This document shows positions 3,235-26,400 of a stretch of DNA of 64,000 nt, piece by piece. How positions within the stretch are numbered: the stretch's first letter is position 1; the number at the start of each line of letters is the position of its first letter. Under the pieces are notes generated by a model. That model saw nothing but the letters and a program-made list of their open reading frames with translations, searched no databases and was not told where the DNA came from. Source of the DNA: Lepidodermella squamata (lineage: Eukaryota; Animalia; Gastrotricha); the NCBI GenBank assembly GCA_047495785.1, contig JBLDXI010000029.1, forward strand, positions 2,852,001-2,916,000, written 5' to 3'. A program made the translations under genes and the position numbers.

Positions 3235-3618
3235 ACGCGAGTTCTATAGTCTACATAGTGTAAAGAACAATCGTGGTTTTAGATTAGAACGGTTGTGATT
3301 TGTCAATCTTTCAACAGAAAATATTATTATAATACGTTTAATTTTGTCACAAATACGTAAATTCATCCATTTCAATGTGCAATCATACGAGGAATCACGC
3401 TTATTTTATGTTTGAAATTTATCGTCGCCTGAAAATGAATAAAACCAGGAACTAGAAAAGAATCGTGAATCATTCAAAATCCTGTGAAACAGGCGATAAA
3501 AGCCGTAAGTTTATTCCAAAAATCAAAATGAAAAATCGAAAATAAAATCAAGACGTGCTTAACTAAACCGAAGTAAAAAATGGGTAACTCGGGATTTTCA
3601 GGGCATTTTAAGGAAGTT

Positions 3619-4169
3619 TCATGGCTGGATCAAATTAGGCTGATCGGACATGAGTTGAACGAGCAGCTGTCTGACATTTTCGTACGTTTCCTTCTCCTGT
3701 TCCTGACTCCGAACTTTGTCCATCCACAGGAAGAATGTCTAAAATTTCAAGATTAAAATCAGCTTTCATCTTTCAGTTCACAACTCACCAATGGCTGATG
3801 GCAGAATTCAGCAGGCAGCGAAGCTGGGCATTTGTTCGTTTTCGATCTCACAGCATTCGCGATGAGGCGGAGAAGTTCAGTCCGGCGGGGATTGTCGCTG
3901 CCGCTCATCAACATATCTCGAATCTGGCCAGCCTGATTGCCGAATTCGATCGAGTTGCTTAAAGGTTTCGGCTTCGTAACTGGTGGAACGGTCGGGATGG
4001 TCGGAATCGCGATTCCGTTTCGCAATTTAAGCTTCCCAGAGACAAGCGATTTCAATTTGGCGGCTCGTTCAGGCACTTTATTCGCCGAACGATTTTTCAA
4101 CGAATTTTCCGACTGTTGGGAGGCTACAACCAGCATAGCTAAGAGTACGAATTTTTGAAGCGAAGCCAT
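3619..4169 (-). CDS. Secreted orphan-family protein, paralogue 1 (intron 3739-3788)
   Basis: Signal-peptide-like N-terminus. Spliced core RDMLMSGSDNPRRTELLRLIANAVRSKTNKCPASLPAEFCHQPL|TFFLWMDKVRSQEQEKETYENVRQLLVQLM is shared with three neighbouring genes. Confidence 0.88.
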
Positions 4170-6813: not shown

Positions 6814-8208
6814 ATCTGCGGATTGCTAACTGAAGTTTAAATTCTAAAATATATGCAGGAGATTTTTTTTCAAAAGAATGAGAAAATGAGTTAAATTATC
6901 AGAAAAAAACGCACAGACAACACGCTCTGAGTGCTTTTCCTGTCAGTGAAAAAAGTTGGTCACTCGCTGAACAAATCTCGCTTAATGGAAGTCGTTCATG
7001 CGTTCAAATGGCGATTGCATTTTTTCTCGGCTGTAATTGACTTTGTATCGACAAATCACGGCGTCGTTGCAGTTTTACGCTGTGAATTACTAAATAATTC
7101 GATGAAGATAACAGGTTCCCAGCGCCCACTTGTCTGATATACGTCCAGTGATAGAAAAAACAATAATATTATTGATGGTCGCTTAGTTCCGAATCATTTG
7201 AAATAAATTCTCAGACGTAATTAAATCTTGGGTTTTCAGGACGAAAAAATTTGGTTTGGGACGGCCTAGAATTTGAAGGATAGAAAAATGCTGAAATCAT
7301 CTTTCAGCTGCGTAGGATTAGGCAGTGCCGTGACTATTACTGGCAAACACACGGTTCCGGCTTGCCGCTTACGGATATCACGTTTTGGAGAGGCGACGAA
7401 CTCTCATTCTGTTGTTTTCATGAGTATCCCATTTCACAGAGAATTTCTGCGACATGATGGATGATCTAGACCTTTTTGACTTTGAACTAAATGGGGGCTG
7501 AAGACGAACTGTGAAAATGCTACTTTAATTAGGCTTATCGTATGGAAAATCGCCAAGGTATCACATTCCACAGTCTCATCCGGTTAAGAGACAGCGCAGC
7601 ATGGCGAGCGGCGCCTTGCTGAAATGCGTGCTGATGATTAAATTTCTCATCAGGCCGATTCATCAGATGAAGCCGTCAATCGTCCAAATACGGCAGACCT
7701 CGTCATTATAGCCTTAGTAACCACATTTTAAAATTTACGAATGCCACCACCATGCTAATTAGATTATACCTGCGTATATGGTTTGATAGCATTTCCGTGA
7801 CCTGGACGTAAGCTATTAAGACTCAAAATTATGTGTTATTAGTGACCGAGGCCCAACTGGGAATGCACCACTTCTCGGGAAAGGCCATAAGAAAATGATA
7901 TAGCTATACACCGAAAAAGACTGATTTCTGGAAAAATTTCATTTCACGCAAATAGAAAATACAAGAAAAATGTGAAGCAGTACTATAATTTTCATAATTA
8001 AGCTAGAATTTCTATGTTCAAATAAACGACTTTTCTCCAGGCATCGACCTAGCGAGAGAGTAAATTCAGAAATAGAGAAAAGCGGAAATTGATTCAGGAC
8101 TAAAAATAGCCACGCGAGTTGAGATGATGATCACAGATCACAGACAAAAGGAGAGTCGAGAAAAATTTCATATACATTAGGCAGAAATAACTAGAATTCT
8201 ATAAAATG

Positions 8209-8852
8209 TTAATTCGATTCTTTGTTGCTGTTGATGTAAAGATCATTGATGAACTTCTTAACGTATTCGTAGTTTTGCCTCTCCTTCTCTTGATTGCGCA
8301 CCTCCTTCATCCATAGAAAGAATGTCAACCTGGATAAAAACAACGTCCGTGATGAATTCAATCATGCAAATTTGCAATAAAAATCCACCCACATTCCAAT
8401 ATCTAATAGCATTTTACTTACGGTTGCTTGCAGAAGGCAGCAGGGAGAGTAGGTGGGCATTTACTAGTGAGGCCCCGGATTGAGTCAGCAATACGCCTAA
8501 TCATTTGTTGACGTCGGTCTGAGTCCGTTGAGCCTTTAAGAAATAAAAGTGATTCATTAAGAAAATTGTCCACTATAATTTCGGACTCACTTTTCAGCAG
8601 ATTACGAATTTCTTCCAGTTCAGTCTCCTCGAGTTTGCCCAACACCAAATCACGAACTGCTTCGACCAGCTGGCCTTGATTAGCCTCTCCAGCAGCCTCT
8701 CCAACCTCTGGGTCTGCTACAACTACTTTGTTTTGGGATTCCGAGTTCTTAAACGACCGGTTCTTCTGCCTCGCGACCTTAGCCGGAGCTGCTAAAGTCG
8801 CCACAGCTAAACATGAGATAAGTAGCGATGTTATCACTGCAAGCCTTGCCAT
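8209..8852 (-). CDS. Secreted orphan-family protein, paralogue 4 (introns 8534-8590 and 8330-8421)
   Basis: Signal peptide. Removing a 57-nt in-frame intron restores RNLLKSSTDSDRRQQMIRRIADSIRGLTSKCPPTLPAAFCKQPLTFFLWMKEVRNQEKERQNYEYVKKFINDLY. Confidence 0.85.
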
Positions 8853-9613
8853 TGGTAGAAACTATATGATAAATTGAAAATTAATCTGATTCTAGCGCGA
8901 CAAAAATCCGATAGTAATCAAAAATGTTTATTACATTATGGCTTGCCAGAAAAACACGCGTAGGTCGCGTAGATGAAATAATACAAAAGCGGTGTTTTTA
9001 ATTTCGAATGCGTAGGTTTTTTTCTGACGTGTTGAAAATTAAAATTTCTGGTGCAGTTGGTCGCAGAATTATTTAGCGATGAAAAGCCACGCAATCGCTT
9101 TTTTCCGATATTTGCTTCAGGGAAGCAATAACATTCCTACAAATAACGCGTGAATCATATCGTCATTTCCTTTATTCCTGCCCGCACACATGGGTGGAAT
9201 TTTCGCACTGCTGATCGGAATCAAGCATCATTTTAATAAATTCATAGCATTTTCAAGATTCATACTATCATGCAACTGCATTACTCTAAATCAACCGATA
9301 ATCTATTTTTGGAAGGTCAAATTTGGATGTAGCATTGAGAGAGGAAGTGAAAAGAAGTGGCTAAAGAATTCCGTCATGGCGAGGTCATTTTTGATCCTGC
9401 CCACTTGCTGTAATGACGAAAGCAGACAATAGCCCTTCCCAATTAGGACACAATTGTAAAAGCTGATTTTGACTGAATCGCTACGCAGTAAAAGCCGCTA
9501 AATTGGACCACTTTGCGGAGGCTAGACATACCGCTGCGACTCCCAACGGGCAATAGCCATAAGCTGATACATACGAATTTTATTTTTTTCTGAATGAGAA
9601 ATCACTGTCCCTC

Positions 9614-11533
9614 TTAGTACATTGCAAACATGGCGATTGGAGTTATGAAAATGCTGAGAATATAGATGAAGGCGAAAAGCCGCCCGGCAACATGGGCGAC
9701 AAAGTGCCATTTCATTTGGCGCGTATCCAACTCTTGTTTGCCCTCGTCATCCGTGTCGCGATCGCCATCGAAATATGATGAGCTGTTGAGATCTACTACC
9801 AGTCCACCGGGTGGGATCATGCTCTGCCGTCTGAAATCGCCGTTGACGTGATAGACGCTACCCCTTCGGTCGGCTTGGACACTTTGCTTCTTGTAATGAT
9901 TGCCGCTTTTTTTATCCACAGAGTAATGCTGACTTCGGCGCCGCTCGGCCACTGAAGCTGCTTGGGGTGGTGGTGGTGCAGTTGGAGGGTGATAGAACAT
10001 ATTGAAGCAACATCCAATGCCTTGAGCGACGCAAAACATCCAATTGGGGACACTTTTCGGTTTTGAATCTCCGTAGATATAGACGTTACTCAACAGCCAA
10101 AGGGCGAGACCTTCGCCGAGCTTAACGACAGTTTCAATTAATTCAATAGAAGGGATTTTGCCTTACCATTGAGAGGGCAATAAAACCTTGTTGTAGGTCG
10201 ATGTAAGTAGTCAACAAAGGAATTTTGTCACTGGACCTGAGAAAAACTTCACTGGATTTTAAAAACGGTAAAATTATCCTACCTTGGGATATCGGTTAAA
10301 ACCATGGTCTGAAAAACTGAATACGACAGGAGGCAGGTGAAAGTGATCGTAATCCTTTTGTCATCACGAATGGGCACTGAAAACGCGGCAATGTGGGCAA
10401 TCGATATCAGAATGCTGGGCACTATAACGTTAAGCCTATGCGAAGGTTAAAAAATGAAAGCTGAATGCTGCGAGAACACCGCATTCTCACATGTAATGCA
10501 TAGATTTTCGTTTGATTTTGATGATGAAATCGACATGGTCGAATGAATTTGTCATCCGAACCGAGTCATTGGACAACTTCATCGATAAGCCTGCTACGTC
10601 CCATTGTTCATTAGGCTTGAAGTACTTCATCGTGACGTTGGTAAACAGGTAAAACCTCATTTCAGAGTTGGAATATCTCCAACTGCACGGAATTATTTCA
10701 ACCCTTCAAATCCTCAAACTTGAAACTTACCTTTCTAACTCAATGGTACATGCCTGAATTAGGGGGTAGAATTAACTCTATTTAGGAAGAAACTGGCAAA
10801 TTCTTACCTGAGTGTCGAAAGGAAATCTATGAGAAGTTCATTTATAATTTTATCTCGATACTCAATCGAACTCACAGTCTCAAATCGTATTCACAGTAAA
10901 TCTCGAATGTCCCTCCCGGGCTGTAAATCGCATAGCCATTGGCGTAGATTCTGACTTTCTCCTTCTCTTTCCCCATTAAAATGTAACGGCCGTCCGAATT
11001 CATTTGAGCTATATCAGGGATCCATATCTTCCTAGCAGGTAGAACTAGAAAATAGAGTTGAGGTATGAAAATCTGGGATTCTCATCATTAACTCACCGAC
11101 GTAATCGACACATTTATAGGAGGTATTTGCCCAAACTCTGAACTCATCCATCCATCTCTGAGAATTTTTCGCGAATTTAGACAAATTTCGCTGAATATGA
11201 TCTTACCACGCTGAGGTAGCCAGAGATTTTCATGATACGCTCCCTCTCGCGCTAGGTGGAATACAAAAATTTCAAGTTATTCTAGTTGCTAAGCCAAGTT
11301 ACCACATCAGCAATAGAAGACAGAACAAAAGTCAAATTGACGACTATCGGTTGCGTAGCATTCAACACTGGCCGTTGCCATGCATCGAATTTCTTGAAAA
11401 TGTTGTCCTCGACGTCCTGATCTGATACCGCCTTGGAGGAGTAAGCGCAATCTGCCGGCCTTGGTATAGTAGGCTGAGCCAAAAAAGATGAGAAGCTCCG
11501 CAGAAGGATAAGAAGGCCAGCTATTGCTTTCAT
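9614..11533 (-). CDS. Cys-loop ligand-gated ion channel subunit A (non-alpha nAChR-like, about 10 exons)
   Basis: Signal peptide, RPV motif, KIWIPDI, Cys-loop CEYDLRLFPFDTQAC, loop B ESWRY, M1-M2 LNVIVPSILISIAHIAAFSVPIRDDKRITITFTCLLSYSVFQ, M4 WHFVAHVAGRLFAFIYIL. No vicinal Cys in loop C. Confidence 0.93.
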
Positions 11534-11574
11534 TAAATCGCAAATTTCTAAGATAAATTACGTCAAGAATTTAT

Positions 11575-13534
11575 TTAGTGATGGCCGTGTTCGCGTTGGT
11601 GAATCTCCGCGTAAATTGCGAAAAGCGCAATAGGCGTTACGATAATGCATAGAATGTAAAAAACGGCGAAAAAGCGGTCAACAACGTGCGATACGTAATA
11701 CCACTGCATTTGCCTCATATCGAATTCGACATGCCAGTTCTCAGCTACGTGCATGCTCTCTTTCCGCTTTATCTCAGCTGTAGTCGATTTCTGCTGGGAC
11801 CGGGATTTGTTGGCGCGGGAAGTTCCGTTTGATTTGATGTAACCACCGGGTGGCGGGGCGCCGTTCGAATCAGATGAGGGTTGACCATTCGGGATTTCAC
11901 TTTCACTGAACGACCCGCCATTCGTTGTCGAGAGTTCGAAGCTATCGTCAAGATCCGCATTAGCTATCTCATCGATTCGATGAACTGATTGCGGTTGATA
12001 AGGCATGCAGACCAACATTCCAACGCATTTGAAAAAGCAAAGCAGCCAGGCAGGGACATGCGCTGGGGCAAATGCGCCGTGGGAGTAGATATGATTCACC
12101 GCATACATCCCCAAGCCTTCACCGAGCTGAGAGAGGGAAAAAAATTAAGGAGGTTCACAGCTCAATTTCATCTTACAATTGAAATTGCGATGTAAGCCAT
12201 TTGCAAGGCGATATAGATAGTGAGGAGAGGAATGTTGTCACTCGATCTTGACCCAAAATCGTGTTTGACTGGGAATATTAGGGTTAAAAGCATCATACCT
12301 CGGCAAATCTTCGACAACCATAGTTTGAAAAACCAAGTAGGCAAGTAAACAAGTGAAAGAGATGCAGATTTTCTCTGATTCATGGCTCGGAACAGCAAAA
12401 GCCGCTAAATGTGCCAAAGAGATCAGAAGGCTTGGAATTATGACGTTAACCCTAAATGAACATTGAAATGAAGGCATCTGGCTAGTTAAGAACAGATTTA
12501 CATGTAATATCCAACTTTTCTTCGAATAGTGAAGTAGAATTCAATGTGTTCAAAAGATGTTGAAGGGTCTAAATAGGAGAAGTTCATCATAGCCATTGAT
12601 GTCCCAATCAAATCCCATTGCTCATTTGTTTTGTAGTATCTCAAAGTTATATTGTTCGAGGCTTCGAATTTCATGTAAGCCCTCGTATAACGCCAGCTAG
12701 AAAATCGAATGTTACAGTACTTTCTGTAGAAATAATTAGGTCACCTTTCTAATTCGAGAGCGCAAGTTTGTGTATCGAGAGGGAACAGAGTCATGTCGTA
12801 ATGGCAATACACTGCAAAAGTTCCGCCCGGGCTGTAGATCGTATAGCCGTTTGAGTGGATCCTAACTTTCTCATCTTGCTTGCCCATCAACGTGTACCGC
12901 CCATCCGAGTTCATCTGCAAACTTATCTATCAAGCTATTCGAAATTGTTAAGGTGGATTACCTGAGCTATGTCTGGAAGCCAAATTTTCCTGGCAGGTAA
13001 TACTGAAATTGAGCCAATTTGCTTCAAAAGAAAATTCCTTCAACTGAAGAGAACTTACCAACGTAATTAACACAGCTATATGGAAACTTGTGCCTCCAGA
13101 CACGAAATCCATCCATCCACTTCTAAAATTCAGATTTTATCCTTAATATTCACAATTTCGATACATTACCACACTAAGATATCCGGAGATCTTCATTATA
13201 TTTTCGCGCTCCGACTGAAAAATTAGGAAAATTGTCATTTTGAAAGAATCCGGGTACTGTAAAGCATGCCCACCACTTCAGTTATAGAAGAGAGCACAAA
13301 GCTTATGTCGACTAGCACCGTATCGCTTGAGTTCAGTCTTGGCCGCGTCCATTTTCCGTAAGGTTTGAAGAAAATATCGGCCACTTCTTGCTCGGAAGCT
13401 TTACCTGTCGCGTTCGCTCCCAGGCATTCACTGGGAATCGCTGGAGGGGCTTCAAGGGGTATTTCAATTGCTGAAATTATACATCCATAAGTTAACAATA
13501 AATTGCTCGCCAGTTGGATATAATCATAAAACAT
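11575..13534 (-). CDS. Cys-loop ligand-gated ion channel subunit B (non-alpha nAChR-like, multi-exon), paralogue of A
   Basis: WTRP, KIWLPDI, Cys-loop CHYDMTLFPLDTQTC, M1-M2 VNVIIPSLLISLAHLAAFAVPSHESEKICISFTCLLAYLVFQ, M4 QWYYVSHVVDRFFAVFYIL. Confidence 0.93.
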
Positions 13535-16500
13535 TTAGCCCGCTATTGAAAAAATGAAAGAAATGTACACTGTCTGCTAGTAAATTAATAAAGATAGCAG
13601 CCTGAGTATAGCAATTCCGTATCAGAAACTCGATATCCGGTTGTAATGAAAACTTCTTTCGACTTCCTGTCATGATTTAGGTAATAAAAAAATCGATTGC
13701 AATAATATAAGAGAATCTATATGTGAATTAAGAAAATTGCTGGGAATAGAATTCCTTGCATCTAGCCAACCAGGAACCAGGACAAAAAGGAGTCCACCAG
13801 AAATACACCACAGACGAAGATCACTCTCAAGAGTGATGTACGGAACAAGGGCTCAGCGTAGGCACGTCGAAGTTGTGCTGGCCTAGTAGTAATTTTCCGA
13901 TAATGCAATTTTTTGCGTCCGCAAGTGGCAGAGGAAATGCTTCAGACATGTAATATGTTTCCAGCTAGAAAAAAATCACGTTGCGTCACGCAAATCGAGT
14001 GATTTGTTGCATTAAAAATTAATTAACCGAGGTTTACTAAAGGCTTTACTACCTCAGGCTCAGGTATGTTCTGCTCGCTACTCTTTGACATTTGTATTCC
14101 CTAAAAAACGGCTGGCACTAGCAGGCCTGATAAAATGCTAGTACAGCTAACGTTGAATGAATGACACATCGAACTGCCTAAAGGTGTAAGTGACACGTCG
14201 GTGTTATGTGAATGATAAAGAATCAAGGCCGTCGGTTTTGATATGATTGCCGTTGGTGATGAAATATGAAATAAAATTCGGACAATGAATGCGTCGAATT
14301 TTCTGAAGTCGTTGATCAGCTAAATGACTTGACTGGCGGTACTGGCGGTTTTCCAGTTAGTTTGGTTGATACGCCCCTCGAATTTTATTTTCTTTGTTTG
14401 CCGGATGGTCGTCGCTGATAGAGCTAATTCGATCCGGACCCGGCGGCTTGTCCCGCTAGCTCAAGTCCGAAGTTGAGCATGTTCAGATGCAGAGTAATCA
14501 AACTCAAAAAGACTCGAGAACTTCTGGCCAAACATGCTATATAGTCTATGTTTTTTTCTAGGCCACTCATCATACCTAACATTACCCTTTTCCTTACTGC
14601 AAATCAATTACGGTTGTCGGTTATCGGTTATCGGTTATCGGCTGTTACCGTTGAAAAAAGTTCGTGCACCTGACCATTCGTGAGAAATCAAGTCCTAAAA
14701 AAAGCATGCGACAAATATTTTTAATATGTTGAAATTGTGAGATTGATCACAATTTTGAATAATTACGATAAGTTGCAGTTTTTTGGTTGAGATCATATTT
14801 TGAATTTAGCGCGCTATTTGAATTTGGCCAACGGAAATCGCTCCGCAGCCCGCTTCTTGAGTCTCGAGTGTGAATTCGGCTGCTCAAGTGGTTAGTGGCT
14901 GTGTTTTGTGTTTCTGCTCCCCTTTATCCTTTTATCTCCCTCGCCGTTGAATGTAAATGGGGTTGAGAATAGCTGAAATAGCTAATCCTTCGGAATTTCG
15001 CGGCACCCACCTCTCACGGCTCACCTGATTCCTTAGTTTTGACCGACTTCGCTCTTTTCGGGGTTAGTACCGAGGCTCCAATTTAGCTTGCCGTTTCCTC
15101 CCATCTCTCTTACTTCGTTTATCGCTGAACATTATTTGGGCAATGACAGGCACGGCGAGGCTATTGTTTCGTAAGTAACCTGTACACTACACTGATATTT
15201 ACCTTGTTCCCTCCTTGTTCCTCATCCCTCAAATTTGCCATATTTGTTTCTTCATAACTGAAAATTAACCCTTTGACGCGCAAGTGTATTGATCATTTGT
15301 TAATACTCTTAACTCGTAACCGCAGTGCGCAAATCAGATAGAAGCTCCGATGCTCGGTCACCGAGCTTACCTACCCTCATAGCGGCCTGGTGCATATTAC
15401 ATACAAGCATTAAGGCGCTTCATCTGTGTTGCTGAGTTGACACCTTACTGTTTTGCTGCTACTTCTAATCGTAAAGTGGAAGGAGCTATTTGTTATAAGT
15501 ATGGCGCTGATCAATCTGCTTATTTGATCATCAGTTGGCATTGAGCGTGTTTCTCTGGTCCAATTAACTCAAGCACAAAATTCTAGCAAAAGCTAATCTG
15601 AGATGCTTAGCAAAGACATAAATCAGCTGTCTGTGTCCTTATCATTCGCGGTACGGGAATAAGCCGACATATCTGTATCTGCTCATGTTACAGTGACATG
15701 AAAGCGTATTTCATCTCTTATCAGTTTAGTTACGCATTCAAATTCACTCAGTGATTGAGTTTAGACTTCAATTTTCGTAACTGTGAAGGTGCTCACTTAA
15801 TTTCGATTGAATTTGTGCACACCGTTCCTGTTGCAGCGCTCTAAATTACGATTGGCAAATTCTTAATTGAAGAGAATTGAGAATCATTGCGTTTTGATTG
15901 ATCGATCGAGGGTATTTGACCACCAAACTTACCTGCGGGGCTGTTTATTCGTCTAATTTGCATCCAGCGGACGTACTCTAACCACCCTGTTTACTCTTTA
16001 TTTACTCGTCCTTAATTCATATATCGTAGCTTGTGTCATCGTTCATAATTGACCACCGTATTTGTTTTACGCAACCGATTTCGCGTTTAGCCTTGGGTTG
16101 TTTTCTCCGAAAAAAAAGTATTTTTCAACTCGCGAATCAGCGCTGTCGACACTATTTCCTGTGTTAGTATTGTTTCGATGAGTAAGTAAGTAAGTAAGTA
16201 AGAAAGCTAATACCTGAAGAAATCGATTAAGTGACTGTATATCAGCGTCGCGTGCGCGTGCGAGCGTGTTGATTCAACAACACACATGTGTCTCACCGCC
16301 CGCCCGCCCGCCCGCCGCCGCTTCATAAACATTATAGTCGCGAGCCAGGTGCGGCGGATATGTACGATTCGTTAAGGATTCCGCGCCGCCTTAAATCTAT
16401 GCGTTATTCATATTGTTACTTACAACAGTGTGAAAATGTGTTGTATTGTTATCACAATATTACATTCAAACGACCATTCGATAGCTTGTAGATTAACTTC

Positions 16501-23400: not shown

Positions 23401-26400
23401 TGAATATTCATTTGATTTTATGAATTAATTTTTCTTGAAATTGAAAATAAAATTGAGAAAAAAATTAAAATTTTAATTAAAATTTGAAAAAATTCGCTCC
23501 TGGGTGGGCTCGAACCACCAACCTTTCGGTGTCCGCTTGAGTAGGCATTAACAGCCGAACGCGCTAACCAATTGCGCCACAGAAGCCGGTGATAATTAGA
23601 CGCGAGATAATAGCATTTGTCAATTACGCGTGTCCACGCACTAACAGCTCGCGTTACGTTTTTTTTATAACGAATTTATTAAGGTGGCCGACTATTATTA
23701 CTCACCGCTTTTCGTGTAAAATATTAAAATTGAAGAGCAGTTTTCCGTTGACACTATTACTCTTTCTGCTTATACCTAGGTTTCTGTCAAAATATAATCT
23801 AAGATTTTACTTTTTTAGCTTTGAAATTTTTGAATATACTCAAATATTCAGTTTCAAATAGGAACTCATGGTTTCCCTCGTATTTTCTCAATTTTAATTA
23901 TTCAAGCGAAAATTTAGCGCAAAATTCTCATTTTAGTTCCAAAGGAAACTTAAATTCCCGCTTATTTTCGGTTTTTTTCAATTTTTTTTATAATTTACCG
24001 GGTAAAACCCAAAAAATCCCGACGATGACTGGTTTGGTATTTTTTGGTAAAATAATCGGTTGGGCCCAGTTTTTCATTAACTATCAGCTCAATTTAATAA
24101 ATTTTCGAAATTTCCAATTAAAATTTTAATTAAATTGAACTCATTTAAACTCATATACTTCTGATTATTTGATGCCTTGAGCTTCTAAAACAGCGTAATT
24201 TCGTGTTTTATTGATCAAGGTGTCACTCTACAGTGCGGGTATTCAAAAATTTGTTGTCAAATTAACGCGATGAGTGTTACAAAGTTCACGCCATTGAGAC
24301 ATTATTTGAAATCTTCAAGTGGCTATATATTTTCTTAACGCTAGGTCACCGATGAATTCAAAGCCCTAATAGGCGACCTGAAACACAACGCCACAATTCA
24401 AACCGAGCAGCAAGAAAATGAAAAAACCGAAAATTTCACGCAATTCGACGGGCTAGAATTGACGGAATATTTCCTGAAGCTGCTAAATATCCTGCAATTA
24501 TCGGACGATGAAACAGCTCTCCGGGCGAAAATCGACGAGTTGGAAGCCGCGTTGAAGACGTGCGACCAGGCCGGCGATAACCTGGGCGTGTTGAAGCGGC
24601 GAATCGCCGTTCTCGAAGTCTCGCATCGATTTTTGAACGGCGAAATCGCGCTCGCCTGCTCGGAGCGTGATCGATTGGAGTTGGGTAACAATGCGACACC
24701 GCCGCCTGTTGCTGTTGTTTTGAGTGAAAATAAATGTGGCAATTGCGAGGCGTATCGAGAGAAATATCGGCGGTTGAAGAGGGACTTTCGTTGCGTTGTT
24801 AAAACGAACGCGGCTCAAAGCGAGCTGGCGGCCGGAAGTTTGCTTTCGATTTGCGCGCGCTGCTCCGTGTTGGATGCCGAGTTTAGGCACGCTATCGAGC
24901 ACAAAGAACGCGTTATCGAGCAACTGGTCGCTGATTTGCGCAGCGGAAATCAACGCGAGCAGCGGAAACCAGGCACCAGCAGCAACAACAACAGCCTGAG
25001 ATCTCGATCTAATGCTAGCCTAGTCGGACCTGGCCGGACTACGACGACTACGACTACATTATCTCGATCGTCCAGTGTTGTAACTATGCGGAGAGATCAG
25101 CCGGCAACTACTAGTACGGGTGACTATGAACCTATCGGCGATTTGCAAAAGGTGAGTGATCGCAGCAATTTGTTATGTTGGCCTAATTTGTTGCGGCGTG
25201 TTTTATTTCAAGTATTTGCCGAAATTGTGGAAACGCCTCGGTCGTCTTCGCTCTGTTGGCTCGTCGCTGTTCACTGAGCAGAAAATCTACGAAGCTATCA
25301 TCACTGCTAGGTTTGACATTTTCATAATTTCCACCTTAATTTTTCAATTTTTTCAAAACATCACGAAATTGAGCTTATTTTCGCTGAAATAAAGCTAAAA
25401 TATTGAAAAATACGAGGATAATTTCGGTGAAACGTCAACTCGTCCGCGACAAGTCATCCGGTGACAACTCATCCGCGACAACTCGTCCAGCGACAACTCA
25501 TCCGAAATTAAATAAATATTTAAATAATTATTTTTAGTGACAACTCATCCGGTGACAACTGGTCCGGCCCGGCCGAGTTGTCGCGGATGAGTTGACACTA
25601 AAATTAAATAATTAATTATTTTTTAATTATTTCAATTTTCGGACAACTCGTCCACGGTCAGCTCGTCCGAAATTCGAAATATATAACATGAGTTAGTAAA
25701 TTCAGGATGAGTTGTCGCGGATGACTTGTCCGTGGACGAGTTGTCCGAAAATTGAAATAATTAAAAAATAATTAATTATTTAATTTTAGTGTCAACTCAT
25801 CCGCGACAACTCGGCCGGGCCGGACCAGTTGTCACCGGATGAGTTGTCACTAAAAATAATTATTTAAATATTTATTTAATTTCGGATGAGTTGTCGCTGG
25901 ACGAGTTGTCGCGGATGAGTTGTCGCGGACGAGTTGACCGCGGATGAGTTGACGCCCCACGATAATTTCTCTTAAAAATCATTTGGGTGTATATTTTTTC
26001 GTCAGCTATTTCCATGTTTTGTCAGCTAATTCCAGTTTTCGTCAGAAATGCCATTTTCTGTCAGAAATGACACTTTTTTACAGCTAATTTAATATTTAAT
26101 TTATATTTATATTTAGAAGTGCTCAGTAACTCTATTTCATGCCCAGTTTCATGAAAAATAACGTAGGAAAATGTTGAAACCTTTTTCCAAAATTATTGGC
26201 TCTATGATTTGGGATTTTGATCGCACGACGTCTTAGTAGCACATGTTGATCTTGCGCGTTTACAGGTAGAAAATACCTATATAGGATTGCTACCGTAGTT
26301 TTTCCGTGGCACTACGGTAAAACTACTGTAACTAGTACGTTACAGAAATAAACCTTGATGGGACACCTTGATGTTTACAACTGAAGACGTGACTGTCTCG

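Follow-up and report, generated by a model that had tools for sequence, protein, structure and literature searches.

The window analysed here, a 64-kb stretch of Lepidodermella squamata DNA, carries two Cys-loop channel genes on its minus strand, and we consider it rather probable that the upstream gene (B) and the downstream gene (A) form a dicistronic unit whose A mRNA is resolved by spliced-leader (SL) trans-splicing. RNA polymerase II would start upstream of B and read through B and A. The B mRNA would then be cleaved and polyadenylated about 10–25 nt past an AATAAA that overlaps its stop codon, while the A mRNA would gain its cap and 5' end by SL trans-splicing at an AG (11549-11548) located 14 nt before its start codon. 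We infer the leader on the A mRNA, the co-transcription of B and A, and the position of the B poly(A) site from the arrangement of the locus.

The junction between the genes, read on the minus strand, has the order CAC TAA ATAAA TTCTTGACGTAATTTATCTTAG AAATTTGCGATTTA ATG. The last B codons, GGC CAT CAC, precede the stop codon TAA (11577-11575), which has one A in common with the predicted cleavage/polyadenylation signal of B, an AATAAA at 11570..11575 that is identical in the second genome copy of the locus. The following 22-nt stretch, TTCTTGACGTAATTTATCTTAG (11569-11548), closes with the AG at 11549-11548. This AG belongs to the candidate trans-splice acceptor TTTATCTTAG (11548..11557), which ends 22 nt past the end of AATAAA and whose G at 11548 lies 27 nt past the B stop codon. 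Between the acceptor and the A start codon (11533-11531) there is AAATTTGCGATTTA (11534..11547), 14 nt of genomic sequence that presumably form the 5' untranslated stretch of A. The preliminary description had placed the stop codon, the overlapping AATAAA, the acceptor and the 14 nt to the A start codon correctly to the base. Since the acceptor is located 22 nt past AATAAA, the B cleavage site and the A acceptor would nearly coincide, and in this respect the unit is similar to tunicate operons and to the nematode "SL1-type" operons, where intercistronic DNA is short or absent.

The whole spacer from the B stop to the A ATG comprises 41 nt, as was claimed before, and it is shorter than every intron of the two genes, which are GT..AG in 17 out of 17 cases and measure 46-59 nt. 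Its single GT (11562-11561) would delimit an intron of 14 nt with the AG, again in agreement with the earlier reading, and the argument that such a gap between two genes on the same strand is too short to house a promoter holds as well. In the 64-kb sequence, AATAAA followed 8-32 nt on by a pyrimidine-rich AG occurs in 0.3% of random 44-nt windows, and a scan of both strands for a stop, AATAAA, an acceptor and an ATG with an open reading frame gave the B-A junction as the sole match in the window. The sequence TTTATCTTAG resembles the 17 cis acceptors of A and B as well as the acceptors preceding the start codons of the family members P_up, Q, and P_down.

By their Pfam matches (PF02931 and PF02932), A and B are assigned as paralogous Cys-loop ligand-gated channel genes, and the earlier identification of two channel genes is thus upheld by the domain matches and the C-x13-C loops, which read CHYDMTLFPLDTQTC in B and CEYDLRLFPFDTQAC in A. 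The models of both genes were built from open frames, GT..AG sites, and the homology between A and B, and the protein searches were made exon by exon; joined exons served for the substitution counts and the family tree. Gene B (11575..13534, minus strand) has 516 codons in 9 exons, located at 13534-13274, 13214-13170, 13122-13059, 13002-12962, 12914-12745, 12696-12502, 12451-12299, 12246-12177, and 12126-11575 (including the stop). PF02931 reaches 39.6 bits on B exon 5 (cut-off 26 bits); PF02932 matches the M1-M2 and M4 exons with scores under the cut-off, an effect of scanning every exon separately. Four membrane helices are aligned in both A and B (M1-M3 and M4). The M1-M2 region of B aligns to nAChR alpha-7 and alpha-4, its SEK motif standing opposite GEK, and B has the Glu at pore position -1' that marks the cation-selective nicotinic/5-HT3-type channels. 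The alignment of segment s6, which contains the loop-C exon, has no vicinal Cys-Cys in either A or B. A protein homologue search with the last exon of B and a PDB sequence search with the Cys-loop exon of A gave no match, and homologue and contig searches found no orthologous locus in another species.

Gene A (9614..11533, minus strand) has 489 codons in 10 exons, at 11533-11303, 11251-11207, 11157-11097, 11044-10876, 10826-10808, 10753-10731, 10682-10491, 10435-10283, 10236-10167, and 10120-9614 (including the stop). Its Cys-loop, which is encoded by a single exon in B, is split by micro-exons of 19 and 23 nt (10731-10826, minus strand); these are predicted from frame and homology, and the frame is open in both genome copies. 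An AATAAA at 9579..9584 on the minus strand, 30 nt past the A stop, probably marks the end of the unit.

Both A and B are expressed and spliced. The RNA run X1 (2015), which consists of contigs of ~90-210 nt and holds 27% of the sampled words, contains GT..AG joints that are absent from the DNA run, and X1 therefore represents RNA of the same or a near-identical strain. For B, the joints are 13214/13274 and 12696/12745, with exon-exon loose ends at 13123 and 13003; for A, they are 11157/11207 and 10434/10490, with a loose end at 10167 reading into 10120. All of the X1 loose ends (four out of four) are ordinary exon-exon junctions. Around the spacer, X1 contigs stop at 11498 and resume at 11586, so that by depth arithmetic the interval 11499-11585, which includes the junction, the first 35 coding bases of A, and the last 9 coding bases and stop codon of B, is without an RNA contig. 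The mean depth of 3.04 in the bin 11476-11659 is fully explained by the contigs ending at 11498 and starting at 11586. The loose ends reported include none with foreign letters at 11548, and none of the contigs bridges B and A. The RNA contig 11586-11721, which covers part of the last B exon, has 30 unplaced letters on the stop-codon side. The X2 "joint" linking 10182 with 12226 through 33 letters was considered as a deletion and rejected: it is a paralogue contig, which reads LLIYIDLQMAY, like P_up.

A second copy of the locus, 97% identical to the window copy (contig C29), is located on contig C40. The depth of the DNA run is ~46 and 28 where the copies differ and ~75 where they agree, and this split at the differing sites indicates that both copies are real. 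Between them, 26 codons of B differ synonymously and 1 non-synonymously, against 39 and 6 in A, with the frames of both genes intact in both copies. From this synonymous excess and the intact frames it follows that both genes are functional and evolve under purifying selection. Intron divergence is 3.9% for B and 12% for A. Not a single difference falls in the 41-nt spacer or in the 145-nt block that contains it, which gives a weak hint of constraint on the spacer (P about 0.005–0.2, for a short stretch). In the RNA run, C40-type letters occur at 11638, 12055, and 12801-12858, and C29-type letters at 12076-12316 (in B) and 10941-11285 (in A); either the 2015 strain thus combines both assembled copies as a mosaic, or the assembly switches phase.

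These data bear on the proposal that the gap is not processed at all, so that a bicistronic mRNA would be formed, with A either translated by re-initiation or carried as a silent passenger. The shortness of the gap would suit this scheme, as would the lack of a mapped cleavage site. Nevertheless, AATAAA and the acceptor stand in the correct order, and A is spliced, expressed and, as its codon differences demonstrate, maintained by selection. Re-initiation past an open reading frame of 516 codons is not known to be efficient, and we find an unprocessed bicistronic mRNA hardly credible.

A fusion of B to A by cis-splicing is ruled out on reading frames. If the phase-0 donors of B (exons 1, 2, 4, and 8) were joined at 11547, the product would continue as AAA TTT GCG ATT TAA, that is, KFAI-stop. 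The phase-2 donors (exons 5-7) would enter the acceptor in a frame that differs from the frame of A, and the sole phase-1 donor (exon 3) would bury the signal peptide of A in the middle of a chimera. A related explanation is that the AG at 11548 is a cis acceptor for a non-coding first exon of A, located upstream of or within B and transcribed from a shared or alternative promoter. The A acceptor is indistinguishable from cis acceptors, and the leader has not been directly seen on the mRNA, both of which speak for such an exon. Against it, RNA coverage is 0 from 13500 to 14400, over about 900 nt upstream of B, no joint into 11548 occurs among the joints listed, and every coding donor of B yields a useless product, as described above. 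Moreover, unpaired acceptors precede nearly all members of the family and some half of the remaining gene starts examined in the window, and their wide distribution is better explained by a genome-wide leader system than by many hidden 5' exons. We therefore treat the hidden cis exon as quite improbable and return to the trans-spliced dicistronic unit.

The acceptors before start codons deserve to be described individually. An AG acceptor is found 1-31 nt before the ATG in B, A, P_up, P_down, Q, L008_g2, and L008_g3. In B, the unpaired acceptor TTTTTTCAATAG, with its AG at 13543..13544 on the minus strand, is located 8 nt ahead of the ATG and is probably the leader-addition site of this first gene. 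The acceptor of P_up (TTTTATCTAG) lies 4 nt, that of Q (TTTATTCTAG) 31 nt, and that of P_down (ATTTTTTAG) 13 nt before the ATG, and the 13-nt stretch between the P_down acceptor and its ATG, AAATTTCTGAAAA, occupies the same place as AAATTTGCGATTTA of A; in L008_g2 and L008_g3 the AG is found 2 nt and 1 nt before the ATG. A T-rich TAG is also found within 20 nt of about half of the remaining clear gene starts of the window. Since an acceptor precedes the ATG in every family member checked, it represents a general feature of the 5' end, as leader addition predicts. The A acceptor, as far as its sequence and position tell, is this normal 5'-end feature of the family, placed 27 nt behind the stop of B.

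The preliminary description had proposed a genome search for an SL RNA gene with an Sm site and a donor, and such a search gave candidates. Two SL-RNA-like modules, both beginning with AAATATCTGCG, are located upstream of 5S in each 8.46-kb rDNA unit (for L007, G000:C22:8800-17500, at 7846-7945 and 8316-8412), in which 5S is followed by LSU, 5.8S, and SSU on the opposite strand. Their putative leaders, which are followed by a GT donor, have 33 nt ending in CTGAG|GTTAGT and 32 nt ending in CTAAG|GTATGA. In the fold of the second module, the donor is paired with the leader, an Sm-like AAUUUGA is single-stranded, and a 7-bp hairpin forms the terminus; its folding energy is no better than that of shuffled sequence. 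Genome-wide, the SL-like pattern has 928 matches as against 3 for the reversed control, and copies or variants are also present outside the rDNA (for example, C9:579851 and C25:1282110). The gene side of an SL trans-splicing system is thus present in the genome, with the modules as putative SL-RNA-like genes. The Rfam models SL1 (RF00198) and SL2 (RF00199) gave no match in the whole genome, although with 50 candidates scored this is a weak result. A contig search with three single-exon open reading frames of the window, aimed at a leader on the transcript, also gave no match, and a literature search turned up no account of spliced leaders in gastrotrichs. As to the rDNA itself, the array on contig C2 reverses its orientation (L005, G000:C2:2925312-2928430): there, 5S is flanked on both sides by facing LSU 3' ends, which represents either a palindromic junction or an assembly fold-back.

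The B-A junction is not the only tight one in this gene family. The genome contains at least 41 loci matching the Cys-loop exon of A, several of them in head-to-tail arrays. In the L009 pair, formed by P_up and P_down (C29:3.245 Mb; G000:C29:3243000-3251000, minus strand, 3566-3639), 70 nt separate the stop from the next ATG, and the junction reads TTTTTTAG|AAATTTCTGAAAA-ATG, with the acceptor 13 nt before the ATG. It shares with A the layout of an acceptor plus AAATTT and is without a canonical AATAAA. In the other arrays of the family, the gaps are ~165 nt, ~385 nt, and >1000 nt.

In a family tree of 13 members, based on eight exon-wise aligned segments, P_up and P_down were grouped (94/97), as were A and B (76/75). 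Trees joining A with P_down or B with P_up were rejected (p-AU 0.0002 and 0.0017, respectively). This rejection implies that the B-A and L009 pairs were formed separately, unless neighbouring genes were homogenised by gene conversion. The idea of a block duplication of the whole two-gene unit, with a long-conserved junction as its consequence, is accordingly discarded by the AU test, with the reservation that gene conversion could mimic this outcome. We suppose that the B-A pair arose by local tandem duplication, the copy having settled immediately after its parent and having retained no more than the acceptor and a short leader region. The data fit a scenario in which a duplicate twice landed right behind its parent, kept its acceptor and leader region, and stayed intact, its downstream position supplying transcription.

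An independent transcription of A can be envisaged if a promoter is located inside B, in its last exon or last intron, and a short outron is removed by SL trans-splicing at 11548. This explanation gains from the acceptors found also before the first genes B, P_up, and Q, because of which the acceptor is no marker of a downstream position in an operon, and from the wide spacing of the other tandem members, which means that co-transcription is no rule in the family. In addition, A evolves faster than B (tree branch of 0.54 vs 0.27). However, such a promoter would sit in B coding sequence that is under strong purifying selection, given its excess of synonymous differences. Furthermore, two pairs of independent origin have ended up with gaps of 41 and 70 nt, which would be less puzzling if the downstream copy required no promoter of its own. 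On balance, we hold the internal promoter to be unlikely, and the dicistronic unit resolved by trans-splicing is the reading that we follow below.

Units of such a compact kind are known from other animals. In Ciona intestinalis, operons have no intercistronic DNA, and in Oikopleura they have 23-30 nt (PMC1488885). The "SL1-type" operons of C. elegans possess little or no intercistronic DNA and keep AATAAA in the upstream cistron (PMC1488885). With signals so close together, 3' end formation and trans-splicing would have to compete or be coupled, and it is argued that a single precursor of such a unit may give rise to the upstream mRNA or to the downstream one, not both (PMC1488885). As in these three systems, the 3' end signal of B and the acceptor of A are almost adjacent, and, as in the C. 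elegans operons, AATAAA is retained in the upstream cistron. The phylum and the leader sequence differ from those of all three, and, whereas the poly(A) site and the acceptor of Ciona were mapped by cDNA, the B-A sites were read from DNA.

With respect to the encoded proteins, the closest parallel is provided by des-2/deg-3. According to PMC2662886 (citing Treinin et al. 1998), these genes share one operon in C. elegans as well as in H. contortus and encode two nicotinic-type subunits; SL2 is joined to the downstream mRNA, and the co-expressed subunits form one channel. Like des-2 and deg-3, B and A are Cys-loop subunit genes placed head to tail. The des-2/deg-3 gap comprises hundreds of nucleotides in C. 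elegans and is tenfold larger in H. contortus, in contrast to the 41 nt between B and A. Other differences are that des-2/deg-3 is a nematode pair with the operon-specific SL2 and alpha-type subunits, whereas A and B are without a vicinal Cys pair, and that the leader and the co-assembly are published for des-2/deg-3, while for A and B we infer both. Since des-2/deg-3 is published, a channel-subunit operon is already known, and the suggestion that an ion-channel operon is new in kind had to be given up (PMC2662886). The rest of the earlier proposal, a B-A polycistron resolved by SL trans-splicing, is plausible: the anatomy fits, SL-RNA-like genes are present, and nothing against it was found.

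The pore of A is unusual within the family. In exon 8 (10283-10435, minus strand), A has the motif DDKR, with Lys-Arg at -1'/0', where B, P_up, P_down, Q, and L012 have Glu-Lys and the L011 genes have Leu-Lys or Met-Lys. The Glu at -1', the mark of the cation-selective branch, is thus absent from A and replaced by Lys. In the outer ring, A has Thr where B has Glu, and in the "DR" motif of M4, it has Gly for Asp/Glu. Besides, A forms the longest branch of the family tree. Judging from these residues, A would probably not make a normal cation pore by itself, and Lys at the site where its relatives have Glu hints that A may play the role of a partner. The term "partner subunits" for A and B is an interpretation to which the odd pore residue of A lends some support.

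A comparable tandem is known in vertebrates, where in the 5-HT3A/5-HT3B-type arrangement a pore-competent subunit gene lies beside a paralogue that acts only in heteromers and lacks the negative ring. The vertebrate genes have separate promoters and are not trans-spliced. The A/B pair may be likened to this tandem in that a paralogue without the negative charge ring stands beside a pore-competent subunit. One can suggest, as a tentative and rather doubtful extension, that a single heteromeric channel requires A and B as obligate partners, and that A, without the inner negative ring (Lys at -1'), would not conduct alone. The operon, with its poly(A) and trans-splice signals packed into 27 nt, would then tie the subunit ratio to the processing choice made for each precursor. 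The unit would represent the first channel operon outside nematodes, found in a phylum without published SL trans-splicing and formed more than once by tandem duplication.

If the dicistronic unit is confirmed, it would be a clean and very compact case of a promoterless tandem duplicate surviving in a genome with trans-splicing. As a second, independent case, after the nematode des-2/deg-3, it would show channel subunits encoded in one transcription unit, and its 41 nt would offer a test bed for 3' end cleavage and leader addition occurring at nearly one site.

Two further observations concern other parts of the window. The top RNA-contig depth in the region examined (28) was recorded at 8900-9083, and a nearly uncovered stretch, 9084-9267, separates this peak from A. 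The 8900-9083 stretch ends in AATAAA (8927-8932, minus strand), ~65-75 nt before the next minus-strand acceptor and ATG (8852); it could be a small unannotated gene, the distal 3' UTR of A, or another tight junction. A tRNA gene at 23495-23586 on the minus strand is 92 nt long, and for this reason it probably has an intron inside.
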